A DNA stretch of 63,747 nt, the filler included, from Octopus bimaculoides (taxonomy: Eukaryota), in NCBI RefSeq assembly GCF_001194135.2. It is 4 parts of 4 records of this genome, joined end to end, with 100 filler letters (N's around TTAATTAATTAA, not from the genome) between each part and the next. Parts side by side here need not be neighbours in the genome. Positions count along the whole stretch, not along the records: positions 1 to 30,526 come from NC_069009.1; 3 more parts are not named here. One strand, given 5' to 3'. Under the pieces are notes generated by a model that worked only from the letters and a program-made list of their open reading frames with translations, did no database searches and was not told the DNA's origin. Shown here piece after piece: positions 1-30,133 of this stretch (its first letter is position 1; each line of letters opens with the position of its first letter). Made by a program: the position numbers and the translations under genes.

Positions 1-118
1 TTGTAACATATCTACATTATATGACAATAAAAATACGTTTCATTCTGATGCATTTTATCAACCTTGGTATTCAAAATAAATTACCAATATGACAGTAAAT
101 CAAGAGACAGTATCGTAC

Positions 119-290
119 CTCACTCCTCGCTTCCGTTTCATTGGTTCCATATGAAACAGCAAAGACCAGACCATTGAAAGTGTCTTTCTCCACTTTGGCA
201 GCACCAATAGCAAGATTGGAATACGAAACCGCGACTTGCTGCTTTTCCAGTGGAATCTTTTCTGGGATTATTTCTATAATGTCCAGCATT
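119..290 (-). CDS. Copy A exon, GAIN domain ([57 protein letters not shown])
   Basis: 172 nt, cacAG acceptor and GTACGA donor, phase 2 to 0. Paralogue at 21856-22027 has the same length. Resembles ADGRG-type GAIN sequence. Confidence 0.88.
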
Positions 291-2053
291 CTGTGAGGAA
301 ATCAAGAAAACAAGGTTCAAATGACAGTGTGGTTCAAATACGTAATTAGTTATAGGTGTAATTACACTAATTATATTAATTAGCAAATCTTTATTAACAC
401 GACTGCTGTTAATGTTGCTTCTGTTGTTTTAACCGTTATTGCTGCTAATGTCATTACAACACCACCACCAACACTACCTCCACCTACCCACTCATCAATT
501 ACCACCACCACCACCACCACCACCACTACTACTACTACTACTTCTGATGCTACTGCTACTGCCGCTGTTGCTTCTGCATTAATAACAGATGTGATCTGAA
601 TTTTACCTGCTAACGAGTTTCATAGACTGTTCTGCTCCGACCAAATTTTCCTGTGGTATGTTCATAATTAGGCTGACAATAGGAAGTATATTCCACAGTG
701 TTATTTCCACGGGCACATTCGGTATCAATGGCACCATTTTCTCATTAATGACTACAACGAAGTCAGCATTTTGTTGTAAAGTCTCTGTTACCTCTGAAAT
801 TTTCGAAATCATTTTGGCAACCAGTTCAATATTTTCTGTAACGAAAAATTTAACAAAATTCAAGGGAATTTACAGCCATTTTGAGAGGAAATATTAGATG
901 CAAATTAAACACTATAGGACAATTAATGTTGTTGGCACTCCGTCGCTTACGACGTCGAGGGTTCCAGTTGATGCGATCAACGGAACAGCCTGCTCGTGAA
1001 ATTAACGCGCAAGTGGCTGAGCACTCCACAGACACGTGTACCCTTAACGTAGTTCTCGGGGATATTCAGCGTGACACAGTGTGACAAGGCTGACCCCTTT
1101 GAATTACAGGTACAACAGAAACAGGAAGTAAGAGTGAGAGAAAGTTGTGGTGGAAAAGTACAGCAGGGTTCGCTATCATCCCCTGCTGGAGCCTCGTGGA
1201 GCTTTAGGTGTTTTCGCTCAATAAACACTCACAACGCCCGGTCTGGGAATCNNNNNNNNNNNNNNNNNNNNNNNNNNNNNNNNNNNNNNNNNNNNNNNNN
1301 NNNNNNNNNNNNNNNNNNNNNNNNNNNNNNNNNNNNNNNNNNNNNNNNNNNNNNNNNNNNNNNNNNNNNNNNNNNNNNNNNNNNNNNNNNNNNNNNNNNN
1401 NNNNNNNNNNNNNNNNNNNNNNNNNNNNNNNNNNNNNNNNNNNNNNNNNNNNNNNNNNNNNNNNNNNNNNNNNNNNNNNNNNNNNNNNNNNNNNNNNNNN
1501 NNNNNNNNNNNNNNNNNNNNNNNNNNNNNNNNNNNNNNNNNNNNNNNNNNNNNNNNNNNNNNNNNNNNNNNNNNNNNNNNNNNNNNNNNNNNNNNNNNNN
1601 NNNNNNNNNNNNNNNNNNNNNNNNNNNNNNNNNNNNNNNNNNNNNNNNNNNNNNNNNNNNNNNNNNNNNNNNNNNNNNNNNNNNNNNNNNNNNNNNNNNN
1701 NNNNNNNNNNNNNNNNNNNNNNNNNNNNNNNNNNNNNNNNNNNNNNNNNNNNNNNNNNNNNNNNNNNNNNNNNNNNNNNNNNNNNNNNNNNNNNNNNNNN
1801 NNNNNNNNNNNNNNNNNNNNNNNNNNNNNNNNNNNNNNNNNNNNNNNNNNNNNNNNNNNNNNNNNNNNNNNNNNNNNNNNNNNNNNNNNNNNNNNNNNNN
1901 NNNNNNNNNNNNNNNNNNNNNNNNNNNNNNNNNNNNNNNNNNNNNNNNNNNNNNNNNNNNNNNNNNNNNNNNNNNNNNNNNNNNNNNNNNNNNNNNNNNN
2001 NNNNNNNNNNNNNNNNNNNNNNNNNNNNNNNNNNNNNNNNNNNNNNNNNNNNN

Positions 2054-2088
<35 letters not shown>

Positions 2089-2625
2089 TACGACGGGCTT
2101 CTTTCAGTTTCCGTCTACCAAATCCGCTCACAAGGCTTTGGTTGGCCCGAGGCTATAGTAGAAGACACTTGCCCAAGATGCCACGCAGTGGGACTGAACC
2201 CGGAACCATGTGGTTAGTAAGCGAGCTACTTACCACACAGTCACTCCTGGAATGTAAACTAGCAGTGTTATAGAATTTGAACTGATGGGCATTAATTCTA
2301 TAATCCTAATCTCTATAGGTATTTTATTTACTAGACTGTATAAGATTCTCTCACAAAAAGATGAAAGTGAAAACTTCAAAATTTGTGAAGAGAGAAAACA
2401 ATAGAAACGAACCAGTGTCTTGTTGCTTCATTTGTGTGACATGTAATTGTCGCAGTTTTTCGTATTTCTGTCATTGGCCAATGCAAAGTGCCATTGTTGG
2501 TTGATGTGTCTTCATTACAAATCTCTGAAAAAGATACAAAACGTAGATATATGAGATATACACGTGAGAAGACTTCAGCGTAATTTATATATATACTGAT
2601 TAAGTAATTGTAATTTAATCAATGC

Positions 2626-2684
<59 letters not shown>

Positions 2685-5127
2685 AAGAAGAAGAAGAAGA
2701 AGAAGAAGAAGAAGAAGAAGAAGAAGAAGAAGAAGAAGAAGAAGAAGAGAAGAAAACGAAGAGGAGGAGGAAGAGTTCGGATGTGCTAACTGGTTTGATT
2801 TATTATCATATATGAACCGATATACTCTCATAGTAACGCAAAATCGTCTGAATATGTAACAAAGGTCATTTTATTGGTTACTTTTCTTGAGGCAAGCCAG
2901 GTGTGACCTCACCATCGAACTATTAGCGAATTCGCTCAAAAGGGGGTTCGCAATAAATTTTATATTTTCCTTGTATGATATTTCCAGAAAGAAATATTTA
3001 CTTCTTTAGTGACAGACGTACAATGTATTAACATTTATGACAGTATTAACATATATTAACATGTATTAACATGTATGACAGTATTAACATATATTAACAT
3101 GTACTAACATATATTAACATGTATTAACATGTATGACAGGCAGTCATTGAAAGCGGTAGATGCTGATTAAAGAAGGAAGATCCGAGTTTGATTTTCTGTA
3201 TAGGAAATGTTTAATTTTCAGAATACGTAAGCTCAACTATTTTGAGTATGTGATCGAGAATCAAAACTTGTGGTTAATATCAGCAGAATTAACAATTAGA
3301 ATAGAGTTTGATATTTATATTGGGCACACAGCAGTGATACAGTTTCGCACTGTTACTCACAATTTTACATGTCATTATAACTTTCCGAAACATTCTACCG
3401 TTTTACCTCAAATCTGTAAAGCTCCAATGGCCAAAATGAACGCCTGTAAATGAAAGCTTAAAATGTTAGAAATACAAGCTATTACAGTAACATTATTGTC
3501 AGAATGTTACTGTTGTTTTTGCATCAAATAGGAGTAGCTGTGTGGTAAGTAGCTTGCTTACCAAACCACATGGTTCCGGGTTCAGTCCCACTGCGTGGCA
3601 CCTTGGGCAAGTGTCTTCTACTATAGCCTCGGGCCGACCAAAGCCTTGTGAGTGGATTTGGTACACGGAAACTGATGCTGGTGTGTTTATGTACCCGTAA
3701 CTTAGCAGTTCGGCAAAAGAGACCGATAGAATAAGTACTAGGCTTCCAAAGAATAAGTCCTGGGATCGATTTGCTCGACTAGAGGCGGTGCTCCAGCATG
3801 GCCACAGTCAAATGACTGAAACAAGTAAAAGAGTAAAAGAGTAAAAGAGTTAGGTAATATGGAAAATACTTCCGATATTGTGGTCGAAATTGCAGTACAA
3901 AACATAGTACAAGACTTCTGATGAAGGTATGACTCTTCAAGGTTCAAAGGCCTTGAAGACTCAAAACTTTTCATACATCCCTCGTATATGTATGTGTACG
4001 CGTGTGTGTACGTCTGTATGTTAAGCCTCAATGGTATCACTTACATGATGATGTCGACAATAATGAAGGAGATGGTATGTGATCGCTATAAAACGTTAAG
4101 AAACTCACTACTTACTTTCACCGAAAACCTTACTTTTCTGAATTCCCATATTACGCAATGCTTGGGATTTGTCCAAAATTGGGTCGATTTCCTGCAAAAC
4201 TTGATCTTTAGTACTTTTAATGTTAGTTATATAGTAAATAGTAAATATCACTAGACTATTCTTGGAACTGAAATGGAATCGATTTTCGTTTTTTTTAGTT
4301 TCAGCAACGCTAACCAGAATATTTTAGTACATGTCAATCAAATTGGTTTTAAAGATATTGATCTTATTCTCGTAACAAACGTTTAAACTTTCGCGTTATG
4401 AAATACGGTCAACTGATTGACCAGACAAAATTTCATTCATACATAATGGATGCCAAGGTACCAAGACTAGTGTGTGTCAAACCTAATTCCTTTAGTTTGA
4501 GTGTGGTTCCTATTATTACCTTGTTAATTACTCGTGTTAATTACTCGTGTTAATATAATAACCTGCATCCATACTCCAAAATATAATCGATCGTATTCAT
4601 GTTAAAAATCAATCAATCAATATATACATATAAACATGTATGCATATGTTCTATATATTACTGACAGTGGAGGCGCAATGGCCCAGTGGTTAGGGCAGCG
4701 GACTCGCGGTCATAGGATCGCGGTTTCGATTCCCAGACCGGGCGTTCTTCGATGAAATTTCCCCAAGACACCTGATGAAGGCTGGAGGGTATATCAGCCG
4801 AAACCTTGTGTTAACAACAAACAAGATGAGGACAAATATCACTCAAATGTAAATAAATTAAATAATGTAAATAATGAGCACGGTTATTTTATTATAATTG
4901 AAATATACAGTAAAAAACACTTGAATGTTTTAAGCAAAAATAAACAAATTACGAATAAAGTTGGTAAATGTTTTTACTTACCTACAATATTCAACTTTAA
5001 ATTCTCCTCGTTTCAAGCGTGATAATTCCTNNNNNNNNNNNNNNNNNNNNNNNNNNNNNNNNNNNNNNNNNNNNNNNNNNNNNNNNNNNNNNNNNNNNNN
5101 NNNNATATATAGTTGTGTGTGTGTTTT

Positions 5128-5175
<48 letters not shown>

Positions 5176-8100
5176 TGCATATATACAGGGTGCGGCAGAA
5201 GTACTGCCATTTTTATGTAGTAATTTTTATAGTACAGAAAAAATTGTTTAGTAATATTGTATTGTACAAAAAATTATTACACTACTTAAAGAATTGAAAA
5301 AAAAATTATGAAAATAAATTGCAGTCATTTTTAGAAATTTATTAAATATTGCTCCATCAAAATAACTTAATCTATTATAGAAAAACAACAAAATTCAATT
5401 GACATGTTCAAAACGCTCCCCTTCGTTTTCAGTTCGATGCTGGGACATATCAGCAAAATTTCTACAAACCATTTGACACATTTCCACGTTAATTGCAGAA
5501 ACTTAGTCAGAAATTGGTTGTATTAATTCATGAATTGTTTTCGGTTTGAGGAAGCAAACAAGATCTTTCAATACTTCCACAAGAAAACGTCAAGTAGTGT
5601 CAGGTCTGATGATCGTGATCAGCACCAATAAATATCGATCGTGATTTCCCTTATTCGCCTGTCTAACTAGCTAGCTCTCTTTGTCTCCCTCTCTCTATAT
5701 ATCACACTCACTCTCTATTGTTTTCACTTTCCTTTTTCAGACGCTATTCTCAACACCTTCAGTTTTCAGAATGTTTTTTCACTTTAACTTCAGTCATAAC
5801 TGTTTTCACTGTAAGTTTAAGTTTTCAATCGCTATTTACAAACGCACACCTATAAATTACTGACAGAAGGAATTTCACAATCATTGATGTAATTTCATGA
5901 TTTACTGATAGAAGTATCTTCATAAATTTCACTTCAATCCGTACGGTTTTGTGTTTTCTGTTGTTGATGTTTTTTTTTCTCTTTCCTTCGATACTGGCTC
6001 TTTGGTTCACTGAGTGACAAATTTCAATTCAACCTGTACAATACTTTATTTTCCGTTAACATTTCTTATTTACTTTCTGCTCGTCGTATTAAGAAACATA
6101 ATTTTTGTTACCAAGTTACTTTCATTGTATACTATCTTCTTTCACTCCTGTATTTCTGTATACGTATATAAGCATGCCTAGAAGGAAAGTGTCAAATTTG
6201 TCAACAATATCAAAGTCAGCCAAAATAATGTCGCTGTGCGGGGAAAGGGAGAGGGCGGCAGAAAGGGAAGCACGCCAAGAAACGAACAGACTGTGTACCA
6301 CAAAACTCAGAGCATCTCAAAGTGATGAGCGGAGATATGTACGAGGGACAAGGAATAGGATCTCCACTGCAGAAGGAAGAGCAGTTGCAACAGCGTAGAG
6401 TAGAAACTTCTTCAGGGTATTTAAGATATGTGTGCCAACACGACCGAGACCTGCAACTGAGCATTTGATACCATTTGACACCAAAGCATATATTGGCACA
6501 CTGTTTAAACAAAAGAGAGTTTCTAACCAAATGAATAATGTAGTCTACTAAATGTATTGAATTCATTACTTAGTTGGCGTTTGACGTTTGTTTTATATGA
6601 CATGTGTGCGTGTTTGTATGTGTGTGAGAGAGATAGTTAGAGTGAGAGAGAGAGAGAGACAAAGAGAGACAACAAAAGAAAACGTGTGTCTACTCACAAC
6701 TCTAGATACATTTTCAGCAAAGGTTTTCTTTTCATTGAACTTTTTGGCTGGGTCCATGGTATAAATCAGATGAAATTCAAAGGAATTGGTCCAACCTATT
6801 CAAGAATATGAAATTAAACTGAGATATTGCGATTATAAATGTGATACATGTCACAGATGCACTGAGTGGTATATGCAATGAACATAAAAATTTAGATATC
6901 CGCTTCTTTAATATCCCTTAATTAAACCAATACCTAAGATCAGTTGAAGTGGCTCTATAATACTGTATACTATGATTAATATACCCTTTTTTGTTGGCAC
7001 TCCGTCGGTTACGACGACGAGGGTTCCAGTTGATCCGATCAACGGAACAGTCTGCTCGTGAAATTAAAGTGTACGTGGCTGAGCACTCCACAGACACGTA
7101 TACCCTTAACGTAGTTCTCGGGGGAGATTCAGCGTGACACAGAGTGTGACAAGGCTGGCCCTTTGAAATACAGGTACAACAGGGTACAACAGAAACAGGA
7201 AGTAAGAGTGAGAGAAAGTTGTGGTGGAAGAGTACAGCAGGGTTCGCCACCATCCCCTGCCGGAGCCTCGTGGGGCTTTAGGTGTCTTCGCTCAATAAAT
7301 ACTCACAACGCCCGGTCTGGGAATCGAAACCGCGATCCACTGGGCCATTTCTCCTCCACGATTAATATACCCAGTTTACTAACAAATATGCAAGTGCATA
7401 TCTTTTTGCCTTATTGATTCTTAGGGCGGTAGAGACAGGTGATATTATGCAATGTTCTTATTAATCATTCATGCGTAATAAATCAGGTGTAATTATATCA
7501 CAAAATAAACAACAATTACCCATGAAATCATTCTTGTTACATAGGTTTCCGCTGCAGCAAGCTACACACGAAGTGCCATTGGCCCATTCATTGCATGTAG
7601 AAGTATTGTTTCTCATAGCTTCAAGGCAGTTTCTGTATGTGCTGCAAGATCTTTCAAACTTCAGTGTGACGCTATTCATTGATAGTTTATATTGGCATAC
7701 AGGCTGTAACAATAAATATTAAAGTCATATACTACTACTACAGCAATTGATACTACTACTGCTGCTGTTAGTAACAACAACAGCAACTTTGAATCATTGT
7801 TACAAAAATTATTCAAAACATCAAATACAATCGAAGCAAATTGATAAGGTTTTGGAAGATGACTGTAATTACCTGTAAAATATAACATATTCCACTGATA
7901 AAGGATGTTGTATAATTCCTTACACTAGCCAAATTTCTCATACTATATGTAAATACGGCCATCAACGCATGGCCCCTTTAAACGCCACACAGATCTATCT
8001 CCAATCATCAAGCTCAAAATATGACAAATTATTCTACTAAAAACAGTATTATTTTGCTAAAGCTTCTTGAAAGGGAAAGCTTTATCAATGTTTCGTACCA

Positions 8101-10035
8101 AATATCAAGCGTTCAAATATCATAAACAGCAGAAAGAAAGACACTGGTGCACTTCATAAAGGAAGATAGCCATAATTTAGTTTGGGACGAAATTCCTCAA
8201 GCCTTGATATGCAAAACCAAAATTTCATAAAGGGAAAGCTACATGATCATACTGATTTTGTGTTGATGGCTATGAATATAATTTAACAGAAAATAAGAAT
8301 GTAAGATTTATAGCTTACCGATTCTCCTGTACAGTTTGTCACTTGTGAATCCTTGCACATCATCTCTGAACATGTCTGACATTGCAAATTCTTTTGAAAT
8401 AACGAGTAATCTACAGAATATAAAATAATATCCGTATTTAGGGACCAAATAGTGTAAAGTATAGCAACAGGAGGAATTATTTACTTTGTGATGCATACGT
8501 GTTAGTATTATATATACTAGATATATAAATGTAATTAACAATTAAAACTGCTTTTATATTCGTTTGAAAATGTTTCAGTTTTGTACAAATTCAACTAAGA
8601 AAAGCATGAAAGCTACTTCCTGTTTTTCATGTTTATCCCGCTTTCACGAAGATGGGAAAATCCTGGAATTACCCAAATGAAACTAAGTAGTTCAAAGCGA
8701 TGCAAACGTTGATGTAGAGTATGCCCCCTTAAAAAAAAAACCTTTGAATATCTTTTAAATTATATCACAGAAAGCTCCTTCATAGTGTCCTGTCAGAAGC
8801 AACCGTCATAACACTTTCCAAGTGAATTCCCATGCGTGACCACCTCCTGAGACTCTGTATATCATCCAACCACCTCGTTCTTGCTTTACAAATAGGTTCT
8901 CTGACAGTTAAATCGGTTCGATGAATCAGCCTTGTGATTCTCATAATTTAATCATATGTCCATAGCTGTGACCTCTAAGTGTTCTCCTAGCTATGCACCC
9001 TGCTGTGTAATGTTATTCCAGAAGCCCTTTGGACTAACCCCATTTCAGCCGTTTTTATTCGCGATCGTACTTTTTCTGTCGTTAGCCAACAGTAATTCCC
9101 ATACATACGAGAAAAGGTACGAACACCAAAGTGAAGTCATAGTTTTGGCTTTGATGCTACAAACATATACTGTTTTGAATCCTGGATCAATTGTTTTATA
9201 TCAGGAGGTTTATTATGCTAATGTGGAGGCGCAATGGCCCAGTAGTTAGGGCAGCGGACTCGCGATCATAGGATCGCGGTTTCGATTCCCAGACCGGGCA
9301 TTGTGAGTGATTTTTGAGCGAAAACGCCTAAAGCTCCACGAGGCTCCGGCAGGGGATGGTGGCGAACCCTGCTGTACTCTTCCACCACAACTTTCTCTCA
9401 TTCTTACTTCCTGTTTCTGTTGTACCTGTAATTCAAAGGTTCAGCTTTGTTACACTCTGTCACGCTGAATCTCCCCGAGAACTACGTTAAGGGTACACGT
9501 GTCTGTGGAGTACTCAGCCACTTACACGTTAATTTCACGAGCAGGCTGTNNNNNNNNNNCTGTGGAGTACTCAGCCACTTACACGTTAATTTCACGAGCA
9601 GGCTGTTCCGTTGATCGGATCAACTGGAACCCTCGTCGTCGTACGCGACGGAGTGCCTTCCTTCCCTATTATGCTAATAATAAACACACGCCGCTTTGGT
9701 TCTACTTCATTTGTATTCGCCAGCTGGTCAGCTATTTAATTATTTAATCTACTGCTTTATTAGTCATCCAATATTTAATTATTTAATCTACTCCTTAATT
9801 AGTCATTCAATAAATCACTCGACCAGTTATGGTTGTCTAAGACCTTTTCGTTCTCATTTGTGACCTCTTCAATAACAGGGAGTGTGTGTTTTAGTGTGTG
9901 TGTGTGTATGTGAGTGTGAGCGTGTTCATACATGCGTTCACGCTGGTGTGTATGTTGGGATGTGAGCATGTGTGATACAGTTCATTCTGTGAGTGCATTA
10001 AAAAGAATATGCGCACGCATGTGTGTGTGTGTGTG

Positions 10036-10068
<33 letters not shown>

Positions 10069-10077
10069 GTGTTTGTT

Positions 10078-10113
<36 letters not shown>

Positions 10114-13100
10114 TGTGTGTGTGTGTGTGTGTGTGCACTTGCATCTTGCATTCATATCTGTGTGGGGCGTTGGATGTGTGAAGAGTGTAGATGGTAAAGA
10201 GTTAATTTCTTTATATCTTTATCTATTGGTTCCACTTTCATAAAACATTACATTTTGAGCAGCAGAACATGACGTGGCGTTTGGTAAAAGTTAAAAAAAA
10301 AAAACGACAAAAGTGAGTAAGATTTTACTAACTTTTACATTTGGAATATTGCATTATGGGTATTACTTCGTCTTGTTTATTTGCCGAATCTGTATGACAC
10401 TTGCCCAGGACTTTCACGGTTCTTTCGTATGTACTGTTCATATAATGTACCATGGCCGGCAGGTGACATCCACACATCATGTCATTATTACCTTTAAGGT
10501 CACTGTAATTATAAGGAGAACTTTAATACTGAAGACTCTTCAGGTCAAAAGAGAAACTCTAACTGGATTTCACAAGAAACAAGGATTATATAATTTCATT
10601 GAGTGTATAGAAGTCACGGCATGTAGACACACGTATGTATGTATATTATGAATACATGCACATGCACATACACACATACGTGTGTAGGCCACTGAAGTTA
10701 CTACTCCTGTGTTTTACGTGTATTGTTATAGTGCATGAAATTAGATCTATCAACCCTCATTCTATTCAAAAGCAGACTTTACAATGACAAAACACATACA
10801 TGGAAATAATTGTTTTGACCTATTAACATTTAAACAAACTCATTGCTATTCATTCTTAATTGTATTAAGCAATTGTGATTTTGATGTTCTCTATTTATGA
10901 TATGAGATTCGCAAAATGTTTTACTTTTCCAAGAAATAAAGATATTTGTTGTACATACATCTCCTTTACGCTGGGAAGGAATAAGAAAGCGTCATCCTCA
11001 ACCTTTTGTATTTGGTTTCTGCTCAAATTTCTGAAAGAGAGGAACAAATATAAGTTGTAATTCGGATTAGTGAAAAAAACAGATTTCTCCTGTCAAATAC
11101 TTTCTAAATTTCTCTTTAGCCAACGCTGACAGAATAAATGCTCGTGTTCACTGTACAGTTGTTTATTTTTCTGTATGGATCTCCTGGCTGTGTAATTTAC
11201 ACAGGAACAGGGTCGATCAATCTAGCTTAAATATGCTGAGTGAAGGGTAAATCTTCCCTAGTAAAACAACAAAAGATGGATGATGATAAATTATAAGAAT
11301 AACAACACAAAATTGTTATGTGCACAATATTGGTTTTACATTACATCCTCCTCTATGATACAAACGTCATTTTCATTCCATAGTCCAATAACAATACAAT
11401 AATATAAGAATACGAACATAGCAGAGTTTGAACTCAGGACGTAGCATCGGGTGAATTACTGTTAAAAATCTTCGTCCAGCGTTCTAACGCTTCTGCCAGT
11501 TCACAGCCTTTCACTTACGGAATAATACTAAACGTTTAAGTAGCCACAGACATTAGTAAATCTGAGACACATTTGCACACCCTTTCAGACACAAATAGAG
11601 AGATACTGTTAGATAAAAAAAGAGACGGAGAAAAAATCTGGGCAAACATATATTACTTAGAAATACATTAGGTCATACTATATGTAATGCGACTTTTTGT
11701 ATTTCTTTTATTTATCAAAATTAAGATAAACTATGTTCTTTTTAAATCTAAAATATACTCTCTTTTATTTCTTTTCTATCTCGTAGGCTTGCAATGCCGC
11801 CCCCACCCCACCTTCCAAAATTTACGCAAGTATCTATGAATGGTTGACTGACAGAATTGAAGCTCATCTACTAGGTCCTCAACAGTTACAATAGCATTTT
11901 GGCCCGCCAGGTTCTGCAGGTCGTCCTCGTTCAGCTCTAGAGATGTTCCAAGATGAAACTGGTCTTCTAGGCTGTAGTTTCCGGCTCGGGATTTCTGGAG
12001 CTACCGTTGACACTGTCTTACGCTAATTGTCCGATCCCCGTATACTGCACTTTCCGTTGCATTTTTGGCTTTATTGCTCCCATGCATGAAAATTTACCGA
12101 AAATGCACCTCTGCAACTTCCATTATAGATTTGAAAAAATAAATGTTAAACCTGAATCGCACCCTTCAAAACGTACACTAGCAACTTGTTGGATGTAGTT
12201 TTTTCCGTCCCCGCCCGAATTTTAGTCCATGCAATTGAAAAAGCCGCATTATTTAGAGGATAGCCCAATACAAAGTAAGAGTATCTGCAACACATATCTA
12301 ACTTACAGATTTTCAAGTTTCGTAAGATTTATGAAGAATCTTTGTCCAATATTCGAGATCAGATTTCCGGATAGATTTCTGTGAGATGAAGGAGAATTGA
12401 AAAGAAATTGTAGACAAGAAATTTCGGATGAAATATTATATGTTACGCCTAATTTATTAAATGCCAGAAGAGACAAGAAAGAACAAGAAGTGAAGAAATT
12501 ACATGATGATAATGATGGAAAGACATACAGTATTTAGAAATATTAAATAAATAGTATCAGCAACACACATCCAGCTTACAGCTTTTGTAACTTGGGCAAA
12601 TGTTCAAGGAATCCGGGTTCAATCGTCGATATATTATTGGATAGATCACTGTAAGACAAAACAGAATTGAAAAGAATTAGTACACTAGAAATTTGGGATG
12701 AAATATTAAATATTACGTCTAATTAATTACATGCCTTAAGAGAACTAAAAGTGGAGAAATTACATGATGATAACGATGAAGAATTTTCCGAAGAGTAAAA
12801 ACAAAATGTTTTATCAGTATTCTTTATCTTTTGTACCCCAAAGAAAAAGAGAATGGAGAAAATTATAGGAATATGTATATACATACACAAAGGCAGATAT
12901 ATAAATATGCACTCACGAAATAATCTTTGCTACTATAGGCACAAGGCCTAGACTTTTGTGGGGGGGGGGGGTCATTCGATTGGATTAACCCCGGTACGAA
13001 ACCGGCATTTAAAATCTGTAATCATCAAAAATACGAAAGGTAAAGTCGAACTCTGCAGAGTTTTAACTCAGGACGTCGCGGAAAGTGAATTACGGCTGAG

Positions 13101-21039: not shown

Positions 21040-21314
21040 ACCCTTAACGTAGTTCTCGGGGATATTCAGCGTGACACAGAGTGTGACAAGGCTGACCCTT
21101 TGAATTACAGGCACAACAGAAACAGGAAGAAAGAGTGAGAGAAAGTTGTGGTGGAAGAGTACAGCAGGGTTCGCCACCATCCCCTACCGGAGCCTCGTGG
21201 AGCTTTTAGGTGTTTTCACTCAATAAACACTCACAACGCCCGGTCTGGGAATCGAAACCGCGATCCTATGATCGCGAGTCCGCTGCCCTAACCACTGGGC
21301 CATTGCGCCTCTAC
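21040..21314 (-). mobile_element. SINE family 1, cut by a gap
   Basis: Matches 9223-9500 in reverse. Confidence 0.85.
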
Positions 21315-21855
21315 GTTTATATAGATACGTTTCCGCTTTTAGGAACAGTTCAAGACCCAAAACTTCACAGTAAAATAGTGATAAAGATGTATGTAAACTA
21401 TTATTGACTGGATGGTTACATATTTATTTGTGGTTTATATTTGTTCATGTAGTTTCCCTGTGTCAATTTAAGACGGTGAGATGACAATCTTCAATCTTTA
21501 CCTTCCATGATCAAATTTCACCGATGTCAACTTTGCCTTTCATTCTTTCTGGCTCAGGGAAATGTATCACTGAAGTCCTGGGGTCAAATGTAATTGACAC
21601 TACCCACTCAACAAAATTCAGACAGTGTCCTTGTAGTAGGAAAGATTACTATGGTAGCGTTATTGCAAAGTTATATAATTTGTGTGCTGCGTATATTATT
21701 ATATTTTGTATTTCAATTGCAATCTCTATCGAGCTTTGTAACATAACTACTTTATGTGACTATAAAAACATTATATTTCATCCTAATATATTTTATTAAC
21801 TTGGCTGTTTAAAAGAAACAGTTAATAAGAGAGTAGTCAAGAGAAAGTATTGTAC

Positions 21856-22027
21856 CTCACTCCTTGGTTCCGTTTCATTGATTCCAAATGAAACAGCATA
21901 GACCAGACCATTTAAAGTGTCCCGCTCCACTTTGGCAGCACCAATAGCAAGATTAGAATATGGAGCTGTGACTTGCTGCTCTTCCAGTGGAACATTTTCT
22001 GCGATTGTTTCTATAACGTCCAGCATT
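21856..22027 (-). pseudogene. Copy B GAIN exon (MLDVIETIAENVPLEEQQ...NETEPRSE)
   Basis: 172 nt; paralogue of 119-290. Confidence 0.88.
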
Positions 22028-22433
22028 CTGCGGAAAGATGAAGAAATCAAGTTTCAATTGAGAGCATGTTTTCATTACCTAATTAGCTACAGGTGTAATT
22101 ACACTAATTATATTGATTAAAAATTTTTTTCACATGACTATTGTTAATGTTGCTTCTGTCGTTGTTACTGTTATTGCTAATACTGATTCCACAACATCAC
22201 CACCGCCACCGCAACAATAACCACCACTACCAACACCATCACCACCACCACCAACAACAACAACAACAGCAAGAATAACGAGTACTACTACTACAATATT
22301 ACTCCTACTACTACCACAGCTGCTACTGCCGCCACCGCTGCACCCACCACTGCTGCTGCCGCTGCCGCCACCGCTGCAGTTGCTACTGCTACTGCTGCTA
22401 CTGCACTAACAACAAATGTGATCTTAATTTTAC

Positions 22434-22665
22434 TTGTTGACACTTCTGTCAGACTGTTCTGCCACAGTCAAAATCTCCTCCGTTATGTTTATCATATTGT
22501 TGATACTAGGAAGAACATTGTTCAGTGTTATATTGACGGACACATTTGATGTCAATGGCACCATTTTCTCAAGTGTGTCTACAGCCAAGTCAATATCTTC
22601 TTCTCTGAAATACGCTGATTGCTGTGAAATATTCAGGAGCTTTGCTGAAAACTCCTCAACATTCC
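22434..22665 (-). pseudogene. Copy B GAIN-A exon (GNVEEFSAKLLNISQQ...AEQSDRSVN)
   Basis: 232 nt, phase 1 to 2; paralogue of 607-835. Confidence 0.88.
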
Positions 22666-23852
22666 CTACAATGGAATATTTGAAATAAAATTTAAGGTAA
22701 TTTACATCCGCTTTGAGACGAAATATTAGATGCTAATTAAACACAACAGAACAATTAATGAATCATTGGAGTTGATTAACAACTCCAACTTAATGTAGTG
22801 CAGAAATTGCTAAATATGTTCAGTTCATCAGTTGTATACTTATTGTTATACATCCTTACTGTCTCCTACTTTGTAGTATTAAATGGAATCGTTTATAGTT
22901 CGAGTATGACATACTTGAATGTGGGAGTCATTGATATCCAATGAGCTGTAATACATCAGCCTTCATAAAGAGTAGTTACTCTGGACGAAATTATTCTTTC
23001 AATGACAAAATAAAAAACGGGTCGTAGTTCTAATACTTAATATTGTTCAGTCTTCCTCAAGGCCATATGAAAAAATCTCAGCATTTCAGGCTCATGGAAA
23101 TATTTTAAATTTTATGGTGTTACAGCAAAAGATGAAAGGGATAAATTGCTCATATTCTATGGTACGCAACTATGTAGACTGCATCATTGAACATTTACAT
23201 ATTTTACAACCATCAACATAACGTAATGTATTTACAAAGATTTGAACCGACATTATCTCTATCAATTTCTGGTTGGGACGTCGTAATTCGTTACGCAACC
23301 ATAATATGCAACCAAGAACATGAAGAACTTTATAAGTCAATGGTGAGTTCTATCGTGTTAGCAGTGCTATTAAATAACATTCTAAAGTTATTTCTACTGA
23401 AACTGAAATTAGATTTTTCGTATACGAAATGTCGTAATAAATCATTACTGGTTCAACTTTCTATAAAAAAAAACCTGTAGAGATAACTTTAAAAAGTGAT
23501 TATCTCTATTGTTTTCTACTTCTTCATTTCCGTGGCCATTCTACAAAAAGTCATTAAAAATGTTAACGATATACTAATAAATTCAAATCTAAGTATTAAC
23601 TTCTGTCATAACCTTTCCGTAACGGATTCTAATTGATCCACCATTGGAGAACATGAACACATGATCTGAGAGCTCAAAAGGAAAATTACGACGTATTACT
23701 ACTTGGTAGATAACTTTAATCGTAAACATATACACATACACACATACAGTTGATCGTAATGAACACTCATACAAAGACATACACATTCATCTTGCTCCTG
23801 AAACTATTAATAAATCTACTATAAGAGTATTTCGAAACCGTCTTTTACTCAC

Positions 23853-24021
23853 CCTTATCAATGTCTTCACTTGTGATGTTCTTTAGTTGTCGAGTTATCC
23901 ACTCGGTATTGAAACACTGAGACATGTTTGGCTTTAGCCAGATACCGGTAAATGGCGAACACTTTCGTAATGTCATATATTGACTTGTTGTCATTTCTTG
24001 TATGCTACCGTTCTGGAAGAA
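23853..24021 (-). pseudogene. Copy B HormR second exon (...KCSPFTGIWLKPNMSQCFNTEWITRQLKNITSEDIDK), frameshifted
   Basis: ttttcAG and GTGAGT boundaries. 169 nt is incompatible with phase 2 to 1; the incoming frame reads CSSRTVAYKK*. Confidence 0.8.
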
Positions 24022-24331
24022 CTGAAAAATTTTTATCAAATATGTCTCATCGTTTTATTTCATCAATCACACTGGAATGCAAGAATTACGTTGATCTGGT
24101 TGTAAATTGTTCTTATAATCTAGTTGATGTAGTTAGACCAAGGTAAAAATTATGTCACATTCTATATAAAATGGAAGACACCAGTGTTAAATGATTTGAA
24201 CTGACGGACATTAATTCTATAATCTTAATCTTTGTAGGCGTTTTATTTAGTATACTGTGTAACATTCTCTCACAAAGAGATTAAAGTGAAAACTTCAAAA
24301 TTTGTGAAGAGAGAAACCAATACAAACGAAC

Positions 24332-24443
24332 CAGTGTCTTGTTGCTATGTTTGCATGGCATCGAATCGTCGCATTAGTTCCTACTTTTGTCATTGGCCAA
24401 TTGAATGTACCATTGTAAGTTGATGTGTCTTCATTACAAAACA
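24332..24443 (-). pseudogene. Copy B HormR first exon (FCNEDTSTYNGTFNWPMTKVGTNATIRCHANIATRH)
   Basis: 112 nt; paralogue of 2413-2524. Confidence 0.88.
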
Positions 24444-24567
24444 CTGAAAAAGATACAAAACGAAGATATGAGATATACATGAGAGAAGACTTTAGTGTAA
24501 TTTATATAATAAAAATACAGGGATATTTGTAAAGGTAAGTGATTAAGTAATTGTATTTTAATCAAAT

Positions 24568-24621
<54 letters not shown>

Positions 24622-25961
24622 NNNNNNNNNNNNNNNNNNNNNNNNNNNNNNNNNNNNNNNNNNNNNNNNNNNNNNNNNNNNNNNNNNNNNNNNNNNNNNN
24701 NNNNNNNNNNNNNNNNNNNNNNNNNNNNNNNNNNNNNNNNNNNNNNNNNNNNNNNNNNNNNNNNNNNNNNNNNNNNNNNNNNNNNNNNNNNNNNNNNNNN
24801 NNNNNNNNNNNNNNNNNNNNNNNNNNNNNNNNNNNNNNNNNNNNNNNNNNNNNNNNNNNNNNNNNNNNNNNNNNNNNNNNNNNNNNNNNNNNNNNNNNNN
24901 NNNNNNNNNNNNNNNNNNNNNNNNNNNNNNNNNNNNNNNNNNNNNNNNNNNNNNNNNNNNNNNNNNNNNNNNNNNNNNNNNNNNNNNNNNNNNNNNNNNN
25001 NNNNNNNNNNNNNNNNNNNNNNNNNNNNNNNNNNNNNNNNNNNNNTGTGTTCAAATCCCATTCCGGTGTGGTAGAATTAATCCATCATCCGGCTTAACAA
25101 AGCTTATCTGACAGCTTCAGTGCCACTAATGAAAAAGAACATTCTGATATAAGTATTTGATCTAGATCTCTAGTTTGGTGACACCTACTTTCCTATCTCT
25201 CACCCTCTACGAAGAACCTGTAAAAGGATCATGGAATTGTCACGAATTAATATGTCATTAAGTATAAGAGGGTTGGGATCTTCTGGAGACATTTGTGATT
25301 ATGTGTGTCTGCCTTAAGAGTCGTCATAAGAAGAGCATTGCTTAATAGTCGTCATCAGAACAGCATTCAGTAATATATAAGACTTAGACGTGTGTATGTT
25401 TGTCTGTGTGTCATGTTTCAATGGTAACACCTATTTATGACAGCGAATATGACGCCGACAATGATGAAAAGGATGATAATGAGTGATAGCGATAAAAATG
25501 TAAAGAAATTATAATGGGTGATAACGATAGAAATGTTAAGAAACTCACTACTTACTTTCACCTTTTGATGTCACCTTAACTTGGTTTATTCTCAAGTTAC
25601 GCAATGTTTGGGGGGTATTCAAAATTTTGTAAAGGTTTTGCGAAACTTGATCTTTAGTACTTCCAATAAGGGTTGTACAGTAAATAGTAAACACCACTGT
25701 ACTTTTCTCCAACCTGAAACACGATTTTAAAAAAAGAAGTTAAAAAAAAATTAGTTTCAGCAACGACAACCAGAATGCTTTCGTACACGTCAGTCTAACT
25801 GGTTTTAAAGATGTTGATCTTATCCTCATAAGAGAAATCTAAATTTCATCGTTATGTAATACGGTCAGCTGATTTGATTTATCCATAATGGACGCCAATG
25901 TACCAAGACTAATGGTAATAATAGCCACCACGCTAAAAGTAAAGGAATTAACAATACTTAC

Positions 25962-26145
25962 CAGGGAAATCATTCTTGTTGCATAAGTTGTCGCTGCAAC
26001 AAGCAACAAAAGAAGCGCCATTGGACCATTTTCTACACGTAAGGGAATTGTTTCTCACAGCTTCACGGCAGTGCAAGTATGTGCTGCAGGACCTTTTAAA
26101 CTTCAATGTACCGCCATTCACTGATAGCCTATATTGGCAGAGAGG
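25962..26145 (-). pseudogene. Copy B Ly6-like exon (PLCQYRL...[19 protein letters not shown])
   Basis: 184 nt; paralogue of 7520-7703, with one Cys replaced by Phe. Confidence 0.88.
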
Positions 26146-27258
26146 CTGTAACAATGAATATAAAAGTCATATAGTACTACTAAACAAACAGCGACAATAG
26201 CAACGCAGGATTTTTAGCATGTAAAAGTCAAATCATTACTATAAATCTATAATTTGTCTGTTTTGTATACTTCTTTGAAAAAAAGATCCCACACTCTCCT
26301 TATCCTCTGGCCTAGCACATTACTCTTTCTGAGACGATCTGGATAGGCCACTCTTGTTGTCCTATATTCACACTGGCGCAGTTGAAAACTTTTAAGCAGG
26401 ATTTTGACGTTTTTGTAACCTCTTCATTGTAATTCATTGTAATTGCGTTACTATTGCGTCTAAATGCAGTTCCAAATTCCGCTGGTAAATATCGTAACGT
26501 CCCTAAAAAAGTTGCCAGACATCAGGAGAAATCGAGACGTCCTTTTTTTCTGTTGCAGCATATACAGCCACTCGGCACCCTCGCTGTGCGGTGGTTGTGC
26601 TTTCAGATCGTTGTGCAGCATCCAGGGAGCACTGATTTACCGTCAGGATTCAAAAGGATTGCTTATACTATGAAATTTAAGGATTTCCTGTAAACACTGC
26701 AACCCTATCGCCCAAACATAGCATTTTACGAGATAAGAATATATTAGCCATCAACAATGAACGTGAGTGCGAGCGGTCCAGAGGTCCTGGTCCCGCTAGT
26801 AGCTACTGCATCTATGTAGAGTGATTTGCTTCCAAGCTGATTCCTGGTCACGTACATTCATACACCCAACTGAAAGCGATGTTTGTCTGAGACAAAGAGA
26901 GAAAAAGGTAAGTCTGAAGCTTGTGGTTTCGATTTCCGGACCGGTTGATACTTTGTGAATTAAACACGACACTTCCTTATATATTGTTCCAGTCTACTCT
27001 GTTGAAAAAGAGTATCAGCTTTGAGTTGATCGTCCCTCTCTCTCTCTCTCCCCTTCAATTGTCATATCCTTGGCACCCAACTGAATCGTGAATGGGAAGA
27101 CCGAGAGGGTGTTTATGTCTGCTTGTGACTACATAGGCACCGAAAACAATTAGCAAAAACATGGTTCAAGCTACCTGGTCATACTGAGTTGCTATTGACC
27201 GTTATATTTTATATGGATATATTTTGATAAAAAGGAAGAAAGTAACATTTCATTTTAC

Positions 27259-27343
27259 CATTAGTCCTGGACAACTTGTCATTTCTGAATTATCGCACAT
27301 CATCCCTGAACATGTTTGACACTCTCATGCAATTCGAAGCAGA
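27259..27343 (-). pseudogene. Copy B fused exon (linker exon 5' part + Ly6 first-half 3' part) with in-frame TGA
   Basis: 27321-27343 matches copy A 10753-10776 and 27259-27321 matches copy A 8319-8381. Reads LLRIA*ECQTCSGMMCDNSEMTSCPGLM. Confidence 0.8.
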
Positions 27344-27526
27344 CTTTACAATGACTAAACACAATACTTGGAAATAATCATTTTGACTTATTAAAATGTA
27401 AAGTAACATATCATTATTTATTGTCAACTGCATTAAACTATTGTAAATTTGATAATCTTTCTTTATGGTATTAGATTTACAAAGTGTTAAACTTTTCTAA
27501 GAAATAAAGAGTATTATTGTACATAC

Positions 27527-27595
27527 ATATTCTTTATGCTGGGAAGGTATAAGAAAGCGCCATCATTTTTTCGTAAACGGTTGTAGCTCAAATTT
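27527..27595 (-). pseudogene. Copy B LRR exon (NLSYNRLRKNDGAFLYLPSIKNI)
   Basis: 69 nt, phase 2-2; paralogue of 10959-11030. Confidence 0.85.
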
Positions 27596-28064
27596 CTGAA
27601 AGAATCAAAGATAAGTTAAAATACGTGAAAGTCAAATAAACCTGTTTTATAGTGTAATATAATTTCTACATTTTTCTTTAGAGAATACTGACAAACTATA
27701 TGTTCATGTTCACTGTTTAGTTGCTTATTTCTCTGTATGGTTCTCCTGACGTTGTAGTTTGAACAGGAATAGGTTCGATCAATTTAGCTTTAACATGCAA
27801 CGTAAATAGAAAATCGTCTGTGATACCGCAAAACAAAAAGATTGAAGAACTAGCAAACCTACCCATCTACGATGGGAAATGAAAGGATGGTGGAAAATAA
27901 TAACAACTTTAAGTATAAATGTATTTATACTGAAATATGGTACGGGAAATGTAATAAAATATAGATAACTGTTGGTTTTCATTATACTTATGTTCAACTT
28001 TACATAGTACATATTCATGATATTACGTTTACAGAACTTCTTTGTAAACGATATTTTGTGCTTA

Positions 28065-28560
28065 ATCAAGACTAATTTTCAAATTAGCTGAGTCCGTGGC
28101 TCTGCTCACAGCGATATACAGCTGGCTGTGTGTAAACATCTGAGTGAACAGAAGCACACCAACACGATTCAAAGTCTGGCCCTGAGACTTGTTAGCTGTG
28201 AATGAAAAGGCTAGTTTGATGGGAAACTGCCTGCGTCGTATTGGAGGGGATACTGGTTGCTGGAGGTTACCAGTGGTATCCGATGCATGCACAGGCGCTT
28301 ACCACTGTGAGGGCCAATCGTTATCACTGCCTCGATGACGTGAGAATTGAGGTCCGTGGCGGTGTAATTTGTTCCGTTGCAATGTCCAATGGTAGGGTCA
28401 AAATTTCGTAGGAGCATTATAGGACAGTACTTTCTTAGTGAGATCCTATGTATAGATAGTCCCGATGGATTCAAGTTGTTAAGAAGATCCCGTGGATACT
28501 AGTGATAATTTCCATCGACTATAGTGTCAGAACTTAGATATCGTCGACTTTCTCCAGGGA
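28065..28560 (-). mobile_element. Helitron PIF1-type helicase C-terminal fragment (frameshifted)
   Basis: IMLLRNFDPTIGHCNGT and RRQFPIKLAFSFTANKSQGQTLNRVGV...HSQLYIAVSRAT motifs. Confidence 0.9.
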
Positions 28561-29955: not shown

Positions 29956-30061
29956 GTGAACGCCTGTTAGAAAGGATAAAAGAAAGAGCGAAGATAAAAG
30001 GGAAGAGAAGATATGTAGAAATATATGATCAGATAAATAATATCAGGAAGATCAAACTTAC

Positions 30062-30133
30062 AGCTCCTTTAAATTGATAAGACTGTAGAATGATTCATGT
30101 TCAATATTCGTGATAAAATTATGGTCTAGATAT
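30062..30133 (-). pseudogene. Copy B LRR exon (YLDHNFITNIEHESFYSLINLKEL)
   Basis: 72 nt, phase 2-2, ctttcAG and GTAAGT. Confidence 0.88.

Follow-up and report, generated by a model that had tools for sequence, protein, structure and literature searches.

The window analysed here (the whole stretch of DNA, 63,747 nucleotides of Octopus bimaculoides, filler included, of which positions 1 to 30,526 come from NC_069009.1) is placed at about 820-850 kb of CM046629.1 (GCA_001194135.2), at 100% identity and with the N gaps in the same places. Comparing the window to itself reveals a collinear tandem duplication (1-11236 versus 21736-27798), and translated matches identify two minus-strand tandem paralogues, labelled copy A and copy B in what follows, of an octopus-specific expansion among adhesion G protein-coupled receptors (GPCRs) with LRR, HormR and GAIN domains, whose members are called ADGRA2/3-GAIN, 'adhesion GPCR A2-like' or 'G6-like' in the sources. 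This work concerns their GAIN-A exon, which differs more between the two copies than their alignable introns do. On balance we think it probable that this exon is weakly constrained and drifts near-neutrally beside introns that are themselves constrained. The argument depends on the following parts of the two genes:

About 11.2 kb to position 1 and further, minus strand: copy A
About 30.1 to 16.0 kb, minus strand: copy B
4116-4267, minus strand: 'pre' (pre-HormR) exon of copy A; counterpart in copy B at 25556-25713
2413-2524, minus strand: HormR-1 exon of copy A; counterpart in copy B at 24332-24443
1252-2053: assembly gap of 802 N, where HormR exon 2 of copy A is expected; the same gap is present in GCA_001194135.2
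607-835, minus strand: GAIN-A exon of copy A, 229 nt, predicted first helices of GAIN subdomain A, with its splice sites and frame
119-290, minus strand: G2 exon of copy A, the next after GAIN-A; counterparts in copy B at 21856-22027 and in L004 at 3257-3427
23853-24021, minus strand: HormR-2 exon of copy B, with a 1-nt deletion relative to L004, L005, L006 and L007
22434-22665, minus strand: GAIN-A exon of copy B, 232 nt, near the family consensus; 100% match to residues 274-351 of P0001
17257-17370, minus strand: GPS-motif exon of copy B, with an in-frame stop (KKVLCFY*HLTSF)

The GAIN-A label is reasonable for exon 607-835, which comes after the HormR exons, is predicted to be helical and belongs to a family with structural and Pfam matches to GAIN. 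The family profile matches the ADGRG6 structure 6v55_A (E = 3.6e-12, profile positions 78-318), the Pfam GAIN family PF16489 matches residues 53-255 of family protein P0005 weakly (E = 8e-4, under the gathering score), and PF26588 (GAIN_ADGRA3) is among the precomputed domains of several members. In the AlphaFold2 model of P0005 the residues equivalent to the exon (48-125) are helical, with a predicted local distance difference test (pLDDT) score of 66-87, and subdomain B has pLDDT <50 (mean 41.7). Canonical AG/GT sites lie at both ends of the exon. As to the other domains, Pfam GPS matches P0005 (E = 2.9e-12), LRR_8 matches P0001 of copy B (E = 1.6e-20), and a HormR-like Cys/WP pattern is readable in exons H1 and H2, for which no match to Pfam HRM was obtained. 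No LRR exon of copy A was seen within the window.

Copy B is a pseudogene, with a stop inside the GPS motif (CFY*HLTSF) and a frameshift in HormR-2, and the broken GPS motif means that it is not a functional GAIN/GPS member. The public annotation splits it into two separate 'genes', P0001 (where an alternative donor is used) and P0014, so that at least one member of this cluster is a pseudogene hidden behind two gene models. The GPS motif of copy A is intact (CSCNHLTSF; KKVLCSCNHLTSFTILM) and lies outside the window, at 23363-23527 of L001, as does an intact first transmembrane exon (TM1), the sole transmembrane exon inspected directly; a 568-amino-acid gene called in L001 downstream of the GAIN-A exon carries precomputed PF01825 (GPS) and PF00002 (7tm_2) domains.

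Exon and intron divergence between the copies

The sequence-only reading had put the identity of the GAIN-A exon between the copies at about 66% (about 78 mismatches in 229 nt), with about 4 codons differing purely synonymously, and that of two nearby introns at about 89% and 80%. These figures are reproduced: the identity of the exon is 66-67%, from 153 matching sites, 76 mismatches and a single gap of 3 nt, and the introns agree at 122/137 sites (89%) for 2275-2412 versus 24195-24331 and at 81-83% for 836-927 versus 22666-22760; purely synonymous codons are indeed few, although they number six. Expressed as the proportion of differing sites (p), the exon stands at 0.332 against 0.18-0.21 in all the alignable A-B intron (2,842 sites; Fisher P about 1e-5 to 6e-5), i.e., about 1.5-fold above the pooled introns. 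Since the exon is significantly above all the alignable intron, its lower identity is a real effect and no counting artefact. The exons downstream have p of 0.08-0.17 between A and B, under the 0.12-0.24 of their introns, and the G2 exon among the parts listed above diverges by 12%. A compensated frameshift was considered as the source of the divergence in the N-terminal third of the GAIN-A exon and is out, the nucleotide alignment being collinear with that single gap.

Nor is the effect specific to this pair. The comparison set for the GAIN-A exon consists of copy A and seven sampled relatives (L002-L007 among them), and in every pair other than those with Octopus sinensis the roughly 100 nt of intron upstream of the exon has a lower p than the exon itself, with 0.15-0.22 versus 0.21-0.31 in pairs without copy A, and about 0.20-0.29 versus 0.33-0.41 in pairs with it. 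An exon more diverged than its upstream intron is therefore a property of the family in the non-sinensis pairs. What the exon is measured against deserves equal attention, and three stretches of intron matter here:

836-928, minus strand: conserved intron element upstream of the GAIN-A exon; counterpart in copy B at 22666-22760
L005 43171-43270, L006 1850-1949 and L007 10973-11072: counterparts of this upstream element
2263-2412, minus strand: conserved intron after HormR-1, the 89% intron of the sequence-only reading; counterpart in copy B at 24182-24331
391-606, minus strand: intron downstream of the GAIN-A exon, with about 35 nt of conserved donor-proximal sequence, then a microsatellite (471-569) and unique sequence

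The claim that the flanking introns are better conserved stands for the upstream piece (836-927). It does not stand for 2275-2412, which follows HormR-1 and is separated from the GAIN-A exon by HormR-2 in copy B and by the gap 1252-2053 in copy A, nor for the downstream intron, which is about as diverged as the exon. Both of the conserved stretches, moreover, are poor yardsticks. The 100 nt or so upstream of the exon are kept in deep paralogues (L005 and L007 of Octopus vulgaris, L006 of O. bimaculoides), with a Jukes-Cantor distance that comes to about 0.4-0.6 of the codon model's synonymous path length. The intron after HormR-1 is conserved across species, with a divergence of 0.073 on the branch leading to copy A (the A branch), and its first 75 nt or so (2333-2412; 24252-24331) are nearly invariant in all copies, the O. 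vulgaris paralogues included. Conserved as they are between species and among deep paralogues, the two stretches cannot serve as a neutral yardstick. Set against a synonymous divergence (dS) of 0.48 for HormR-1 on the A branch, both have changed far less than synonymous sites; their conservation would seem to be functional. Such elements common to deep paralogues are the least expected item of this work, and they may have a splicing or regulatory role.

Within the upstream element, TAATT and ATTTGCAT-like motifs are present, and its distal half is replaced in both O. sinensis copies. The stretch 2333-2412 contains an imperfect inverted repeat (TCTCTCTTCACAAA ... TTTGTGAGAGA), and RNAalifold predicts exon-intron pairing there, without compensatory changes. 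A conserved RNA structure or exon-intron duplex in the conserved introns was rejected, the covariation terms of RNAalifold being positive (i.e., penalising), with almost no compensatory pairs. Neither is the distance to the splice site a main driver of intron conservation, as its pooled effect is small (0.183, 0.194, 0.207).

The downstream intron (391-606) has changed along the A lineage as much as the exon has, with 0.225-0.29 on the A branch and an A-B p of 0.24-0.34. Over 391-569 the A-B p of 0.296 is not significantly different from the 0.332 of the exon. Substitutions unique to copy A occur at 6-12 per 40 alignment columns from about 842 to about 391, in exon and intron alike, fall to 2-4 per 40 over 390-108 (the acceptor region and G2) and climb again over 107-1; the high divergence of the A lineage thus extends about 215 nt into the downstream intron. 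It would be wrong to say that the GAIN-A exon evolves exactly like deep intron everywhere, since intron more than 100 nt away from splice sites has p = 0.207 against 0.332, and the equivalence holds locally.

The trinucleotide microsatellite of this intron (coding-strand GCA/GTA/GTG units, at 471-569 and about 22253-22400, minus strand) sits at the same intron position in 6/7 relatives (L002-L005 and L007 among them), the contig of L006 stopping about 15 nt past the exon; its position is conserved and its sequence unstable. At the opposite end of the exon, copy B shows about 8 unique substitutions in 40 columns across the acceptor and the first 30 nt or so (803-842; 22640-22680), a region in which copy A has the same sequence states as the O. 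sinensis copies.

The lineage of copy A and explanations for its divergence

The sequence-only reading had weighed neutral decay of the pseudogene copy as a cause of the low exon identity and set it aside, and its premise about the pseudogene is reversed: pseudogene B keeps a consensus-like exon and the intact-looking copy A is the diverged one. Family proteins match the GAIN-A exon of copy B at 57-65% of amino acids and that of copy A at 39-45%, and in the G2 exon they match A at least as well as B. On the DNA level, the GAIN-A exon of A lies at p 0.31-0.41 from all seven relatives, roughly equidistant; for B the distance to L004 is 0.08 and to the O. sinensis copies 0.15. In the family alignment copy A has its own replacements at conserved positions and a deletion of one codon, with unique residues even where all the other members, deep paralogues included, are invariant; two N-x-S/T sequons kept in all other members are lost (NVS -> NVP, NIT -> EIT). 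The observation behind this work is thus partly confirmed, i.e., its numbers are right, and both the yardsticks chosen for it and the direction assumed were wrong.

Codon models were fitted with our own GY94/F3x4 likelihood code, not PAML or HyPhy, and the NG86 counts agree with them in magnitude. Over the eight sequences of the GAIN-A exon the single ratio of replacement to synonymous substitution (omega, or dN/dS) is 0.92 under M0 (0.80 without copy A), with a background of 0.82, so that a family-wide value of 0.8-0.93 is not well below 1. M1a places 89% of the codons at omega = 1, and M2a places 2% (one codon, alignment column 4) at an omega of about 10. The ratio on the A branch (omega_A) is 1.4-1.8 with eight sequences, depending on where A is attached, and twice the log-likelihood difference (2dlnL) is 0.75-2.1 against omega_A = 1 and 1.4-3.2 against one ratio for all branches, none of it significant; across all the models omega_A = 1 is never rejected (2dlnL 0.75-2.4, P 0.12-0.4). 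Branch models with four taxa (A, B and two O. sinensis copies) estimate omega_A at 0.90 in the pre exon, 0.32 in HormR-1, 1.86 in GAIN-A (P = 0.12 versus 1) and 0.31 in G2; pooling gives 1.39 for pre and GAIN-A (P = 0.29) and 0.97 once HormR-1 is included. G2 is thus constrained in copy A, with 0.27-0.31 across models.

The same four-taxon models give dS on the A branch of 0.42 in pre, 0.48 in HormR-1, 0.26 in GAIN-A and 0.12 in G2, and given the 0.42-0.48 of the neighbouring exons the total divergence of the GAIN-A exon fits the local synonymous divergence. Three-taxon estimates of the A branch place the GAIN-A exon (0.220) beside the pre exon (0.227), the introns around pre (0.206-0.208) and intron 391-470 (0.225), with 0.174 for intron 1-118 and 0.047-0.108 for the splice-proximal intron by HormR-1 and GAIN-A, the two pieces of the sequence-only reading being at 0.047-0.094. 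When 70 substitutions (an upper bound, counted against an ancestor proxy) are placed randomly on the inferred ancestor, 42.2 +/- 2.9 amino-acid changes are expected, and 43 are observed on the A branch.

On these results we suggest a mostly passive mode of change. The GAIN-A exon would be almost free of purifying selection in the family, and along the long A lineage it would have taken substitutions at roughly the local synonymous or deep-intron rate, split between synonymous and replacement changes as under random mutation. Pseudogene B would retain a near-ancestral exon, HormR-1, G2 and the downstream exons would stay under purifying selection, and the introns that can be aligned by eye would be constrained non-coding elements next to splice sites, which would be the main reason why the exon looks more diverged. 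This way, an exon identity below intron identity would result from setting a near-neutral exon against constrained intron elements, and the changes of the A lineage would reflect near-neutral drift, tolerated by the structure of the GAIN-A helices, and not adaptation.

Several observations weigh against drift, and some of them also count for positive selection. With 76 codons and 4-8 sequences the codon tests have little power. Every model of the GAIN-A exon alone puts omega_A, as a point estimate, above 1 (1.4-1.9). M2a is preferred over M1a at P = 0.024 with copy A and 0.052 without it, one codon driving the difference. Between A and B the exon's replacement divergence (dN) by NG86 reaches 0.52, higher than the 0.30 of dS pooled over the other exons, and estimates of 0.48-0.52 are above the divergence (K) of the introns; on the A branch, likewise, a dN of 0.39-0.48 exceeds the raw intron divergence of 0.14-0.21. 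The excess of the exon over the pooled introns, given above, belongs here as well (P about 4e-5 in this context), as does the borderline excess over intron 391-569 when the microsatellite is removed (p = 0.238; P = 0.047). The exon has kept its frame and its two splice sites, though the neutral probability of meeting no stop is 0.19, and G2 next to it is under constraint in A. Episodic positive selection, i.e., a neofunctionalisation that remodelled the GAIN-A helices of copy A after the duplication with loss of the sequons and of a codon, would also account for the A-unique residues at otherwise invariant sites, and accelerated branches have been published for this expansion (PMC6408891). We nonetheless consider it unlikely, if credible: none of the likelihood-ratio tests rejects omega_A = 1, the pooled upstream exons come out at 0.97, the family background is already about 0.8-0.9, the synonymous and replacement changes divide as in random mutation, and the adjacent intron is equally diverged. 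Doubtful, too, is an adaptive burst in these helices soon after the duplication (more than 40 replacements, two sequons and a codon lost), possibly creating a new interaction surface of the ectodomain, with the family-wide intron elements under a shared splicing or regulatory constraint.

A different history could lie behind the abrupt switches in the density of A-unique changes at about 842, 390 and 107. The tract from about 842 to 391 may descend from a distant, unsampled paralogue, or else the islands 390-108 and 893-928 may have been homogenised between A and B and the exon not. Such a mosaic would fit the neighbour-joining tree of G2, where A groups with B and L004 (84% bootstrap), next to the GAIN-A tree, where A falls outside B, L004, the sinensis copies and V5 (56-58%); it would fit, too, the outlying position of A in deep introns and upstream exons, unlike in G2, the A-branch dS of 0.12 in G2 versus 0.26-0.48 in the upstream exons, and a GENECONV-like run test of A-B identity (P = 0.043). 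The bootstrap for a basal A is weak, however, long-branch attraction would yield the same tree, the run test is marginal, and purifying selection, acting on G2 and on splice-proximal intron, explains the islands of low divergence just as well; the low dS of G2 itself may stem either from a short patch of gene conversion or from no more than such selection. No donor nearer than p 0.31 was found among the seven relatives in a search that covered the sampled paralogues and annotated proteins, and among 5.8 billion database proteins a search for an orthologue or donor of the exon returned P0015, P0004 and P0009 only, none of them A-like in it. With states unique to A at sites invariant even in deep paralogues, we regard a mosaic as improbable. 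Conversion limited to the exon, as the sequence-only reading had envisaged, is not supported either, given the same lack of a donor, the rough equidistance of A and the continuation of the tract into the downstream intron; in the trees, no other paralogue groups with the exon of A.

Finally, the exon lies about 40 nt from the long, unstable microsatellite, and a locally raised mutation rate could make it and intron 391-606 mutate faster. The divergence peaks in and next to the repeat (A-B p of 0.34 in 471-569 and 0.30 over 391-569), and synonymous and replacement changes are both up in the exon. Alignment within the repeat is uncertain, though, and the pre exon, which is far from it, has diverged as much along the A branch. 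The repeat adjoins the exon in the paralogues as well, yet the divergence of the exon is ordinary in B, L004 and the sinensis copies, and we consider this explanation very improbable. Near-neutral drift of a weakly constrained exon remains the reading we favour. The interpretation offered by the sequence-only reading is partly supported: none of the three outcomes that it named as refuting has occurred, and the ectodomain exon does evolve very fast, but diversifying selection of the toxin kind is not supported, with omega_A never significantly above 1, a pooled value of 0.97 for the three upstream exons and a single codon with omega >1.

Other features of the window

The remaining exons of the two copies are these:

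7461-7712, minus strand: Cys-rich exon of copy A
25948-26154, minus strand: counterpart of the Cys-rich region in copy B
30061-30132, minus strand: LRR exon of copy B
Down to about 15993, minus strand: further exons of copy B

The Cys-rich exon is part of the annotated copy A protein P0015 and is skipped in the copy B model P0001. Its Cys pattern resembles that of a Ly6/uPAR three-finger domain; Pfam gave no match for the exon even at E = 10. Elsewhere in the family, the GAIN-A exon of one O. sinensis copy has an in-frame 12-nt deletion (L003 11670-11891), and HormR exon 2 has deletions of 18-21 nt or larger in L004 (1229-1357) and in the O. sinensis copies (L002/L003, about 9940-10125). All these exon indels of other members are in frame wherever a length is given, and they suggest weak constraint or decay across the cluster.

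Interspersed repeats of 89-94% mutual identity, the longest about 320 bp, are found at 929-1251, 6991-7338, 9220-9657 and 21040-21317, in introns of both copies and between the copies, and several of them abut assembly gaps; they are probably SINE-like (short interspersed nuclear element) sequences. A second repeat of 145 bp forms an inverted pair (2104-2248 versus 3530-3675). At 28062-28474, on the minus strand, two overlapping open reading frames code for pieces of a helicase of the Pif1 type (Pfam Pif1_2B_dom, E = 6e-9; UvrD_C_2/helicase C-terminal, E = 3e-4, under gathering); the upstream intron region of copy B probably harbours a Helitron-like element here that has decayed. An Rfam scan of the window found nothing.

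Relation to known systems

Exons that are more diverged between paralogues than their flanking introns are known from venom-toxin genes (e.g., snake PLA2, three-finger toxins and conotoxins), with many replacements and few purely synonymous differences, and in the exons of the mature toxin peptides dN/dS is clearly >1 with many selected sites. The GAIN-A exon resembles them in that its upstream intron is more conserved in every non-sinensis pair. It differs in having an omega of 0.8-0.9, an omega_A not significantly above 1 and one selected codon at most, and in a downstream intron that is as diverged as the exon itself. The case is thus largely ordinary, and toxin-like positive selection is not supported. 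For an exon to look more diverged than intron no such selection is needed: a weakly constrained exon next to constrained splice-proximal intron suffices, and the choice by eye of whatever intron can be aligned skews the yardstick.

In these receptors both GAIN subdomain A and the linker before HormR would be drifting at close to the neutral rate, and the HormR, GAIN-B/GPS and transmembrane exons are constrained. GAIN subdomain A is known as the variable part of the domain, its conservation dropping towards the N-terminus (PMC11697300, Seufert et al. 2025), and the exon studied here agrees with what is described for adhesion GPCRs (Arac et al. 2012, PMC3321182; PMC11697300) in encoding a predicted helical subdomain directly after HormR. 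The known variability, however, is between distant receptors, whereas the near-neutral evolution found here is between tandem paralogues of very recent origin, one of which is a pseudogene.

The octopus-specific expansion itself corresponds to 'group 3' of Ritschard et al. 2019 (PMC6408891), with the same organism and tandem adhesion GPCRs with GPS and an adhesion 7TM, some with LRRs. Branch tests in that study point to accelerated evolution (omega >1 on some branches) and to no individual sites, and the family omega of 0.8-0.9 and the single-codon M2a signal obtained here agree with its result. It differs from this work in treating whole proteins (22 sequences, among which A and B may be), without exon-level rates, the contrast to conserved introns or the pseudogene status of each copy, so that the results presented here add exon-level detail to a known cephalopod lineage-specific expansion of adhesion GPCRs.

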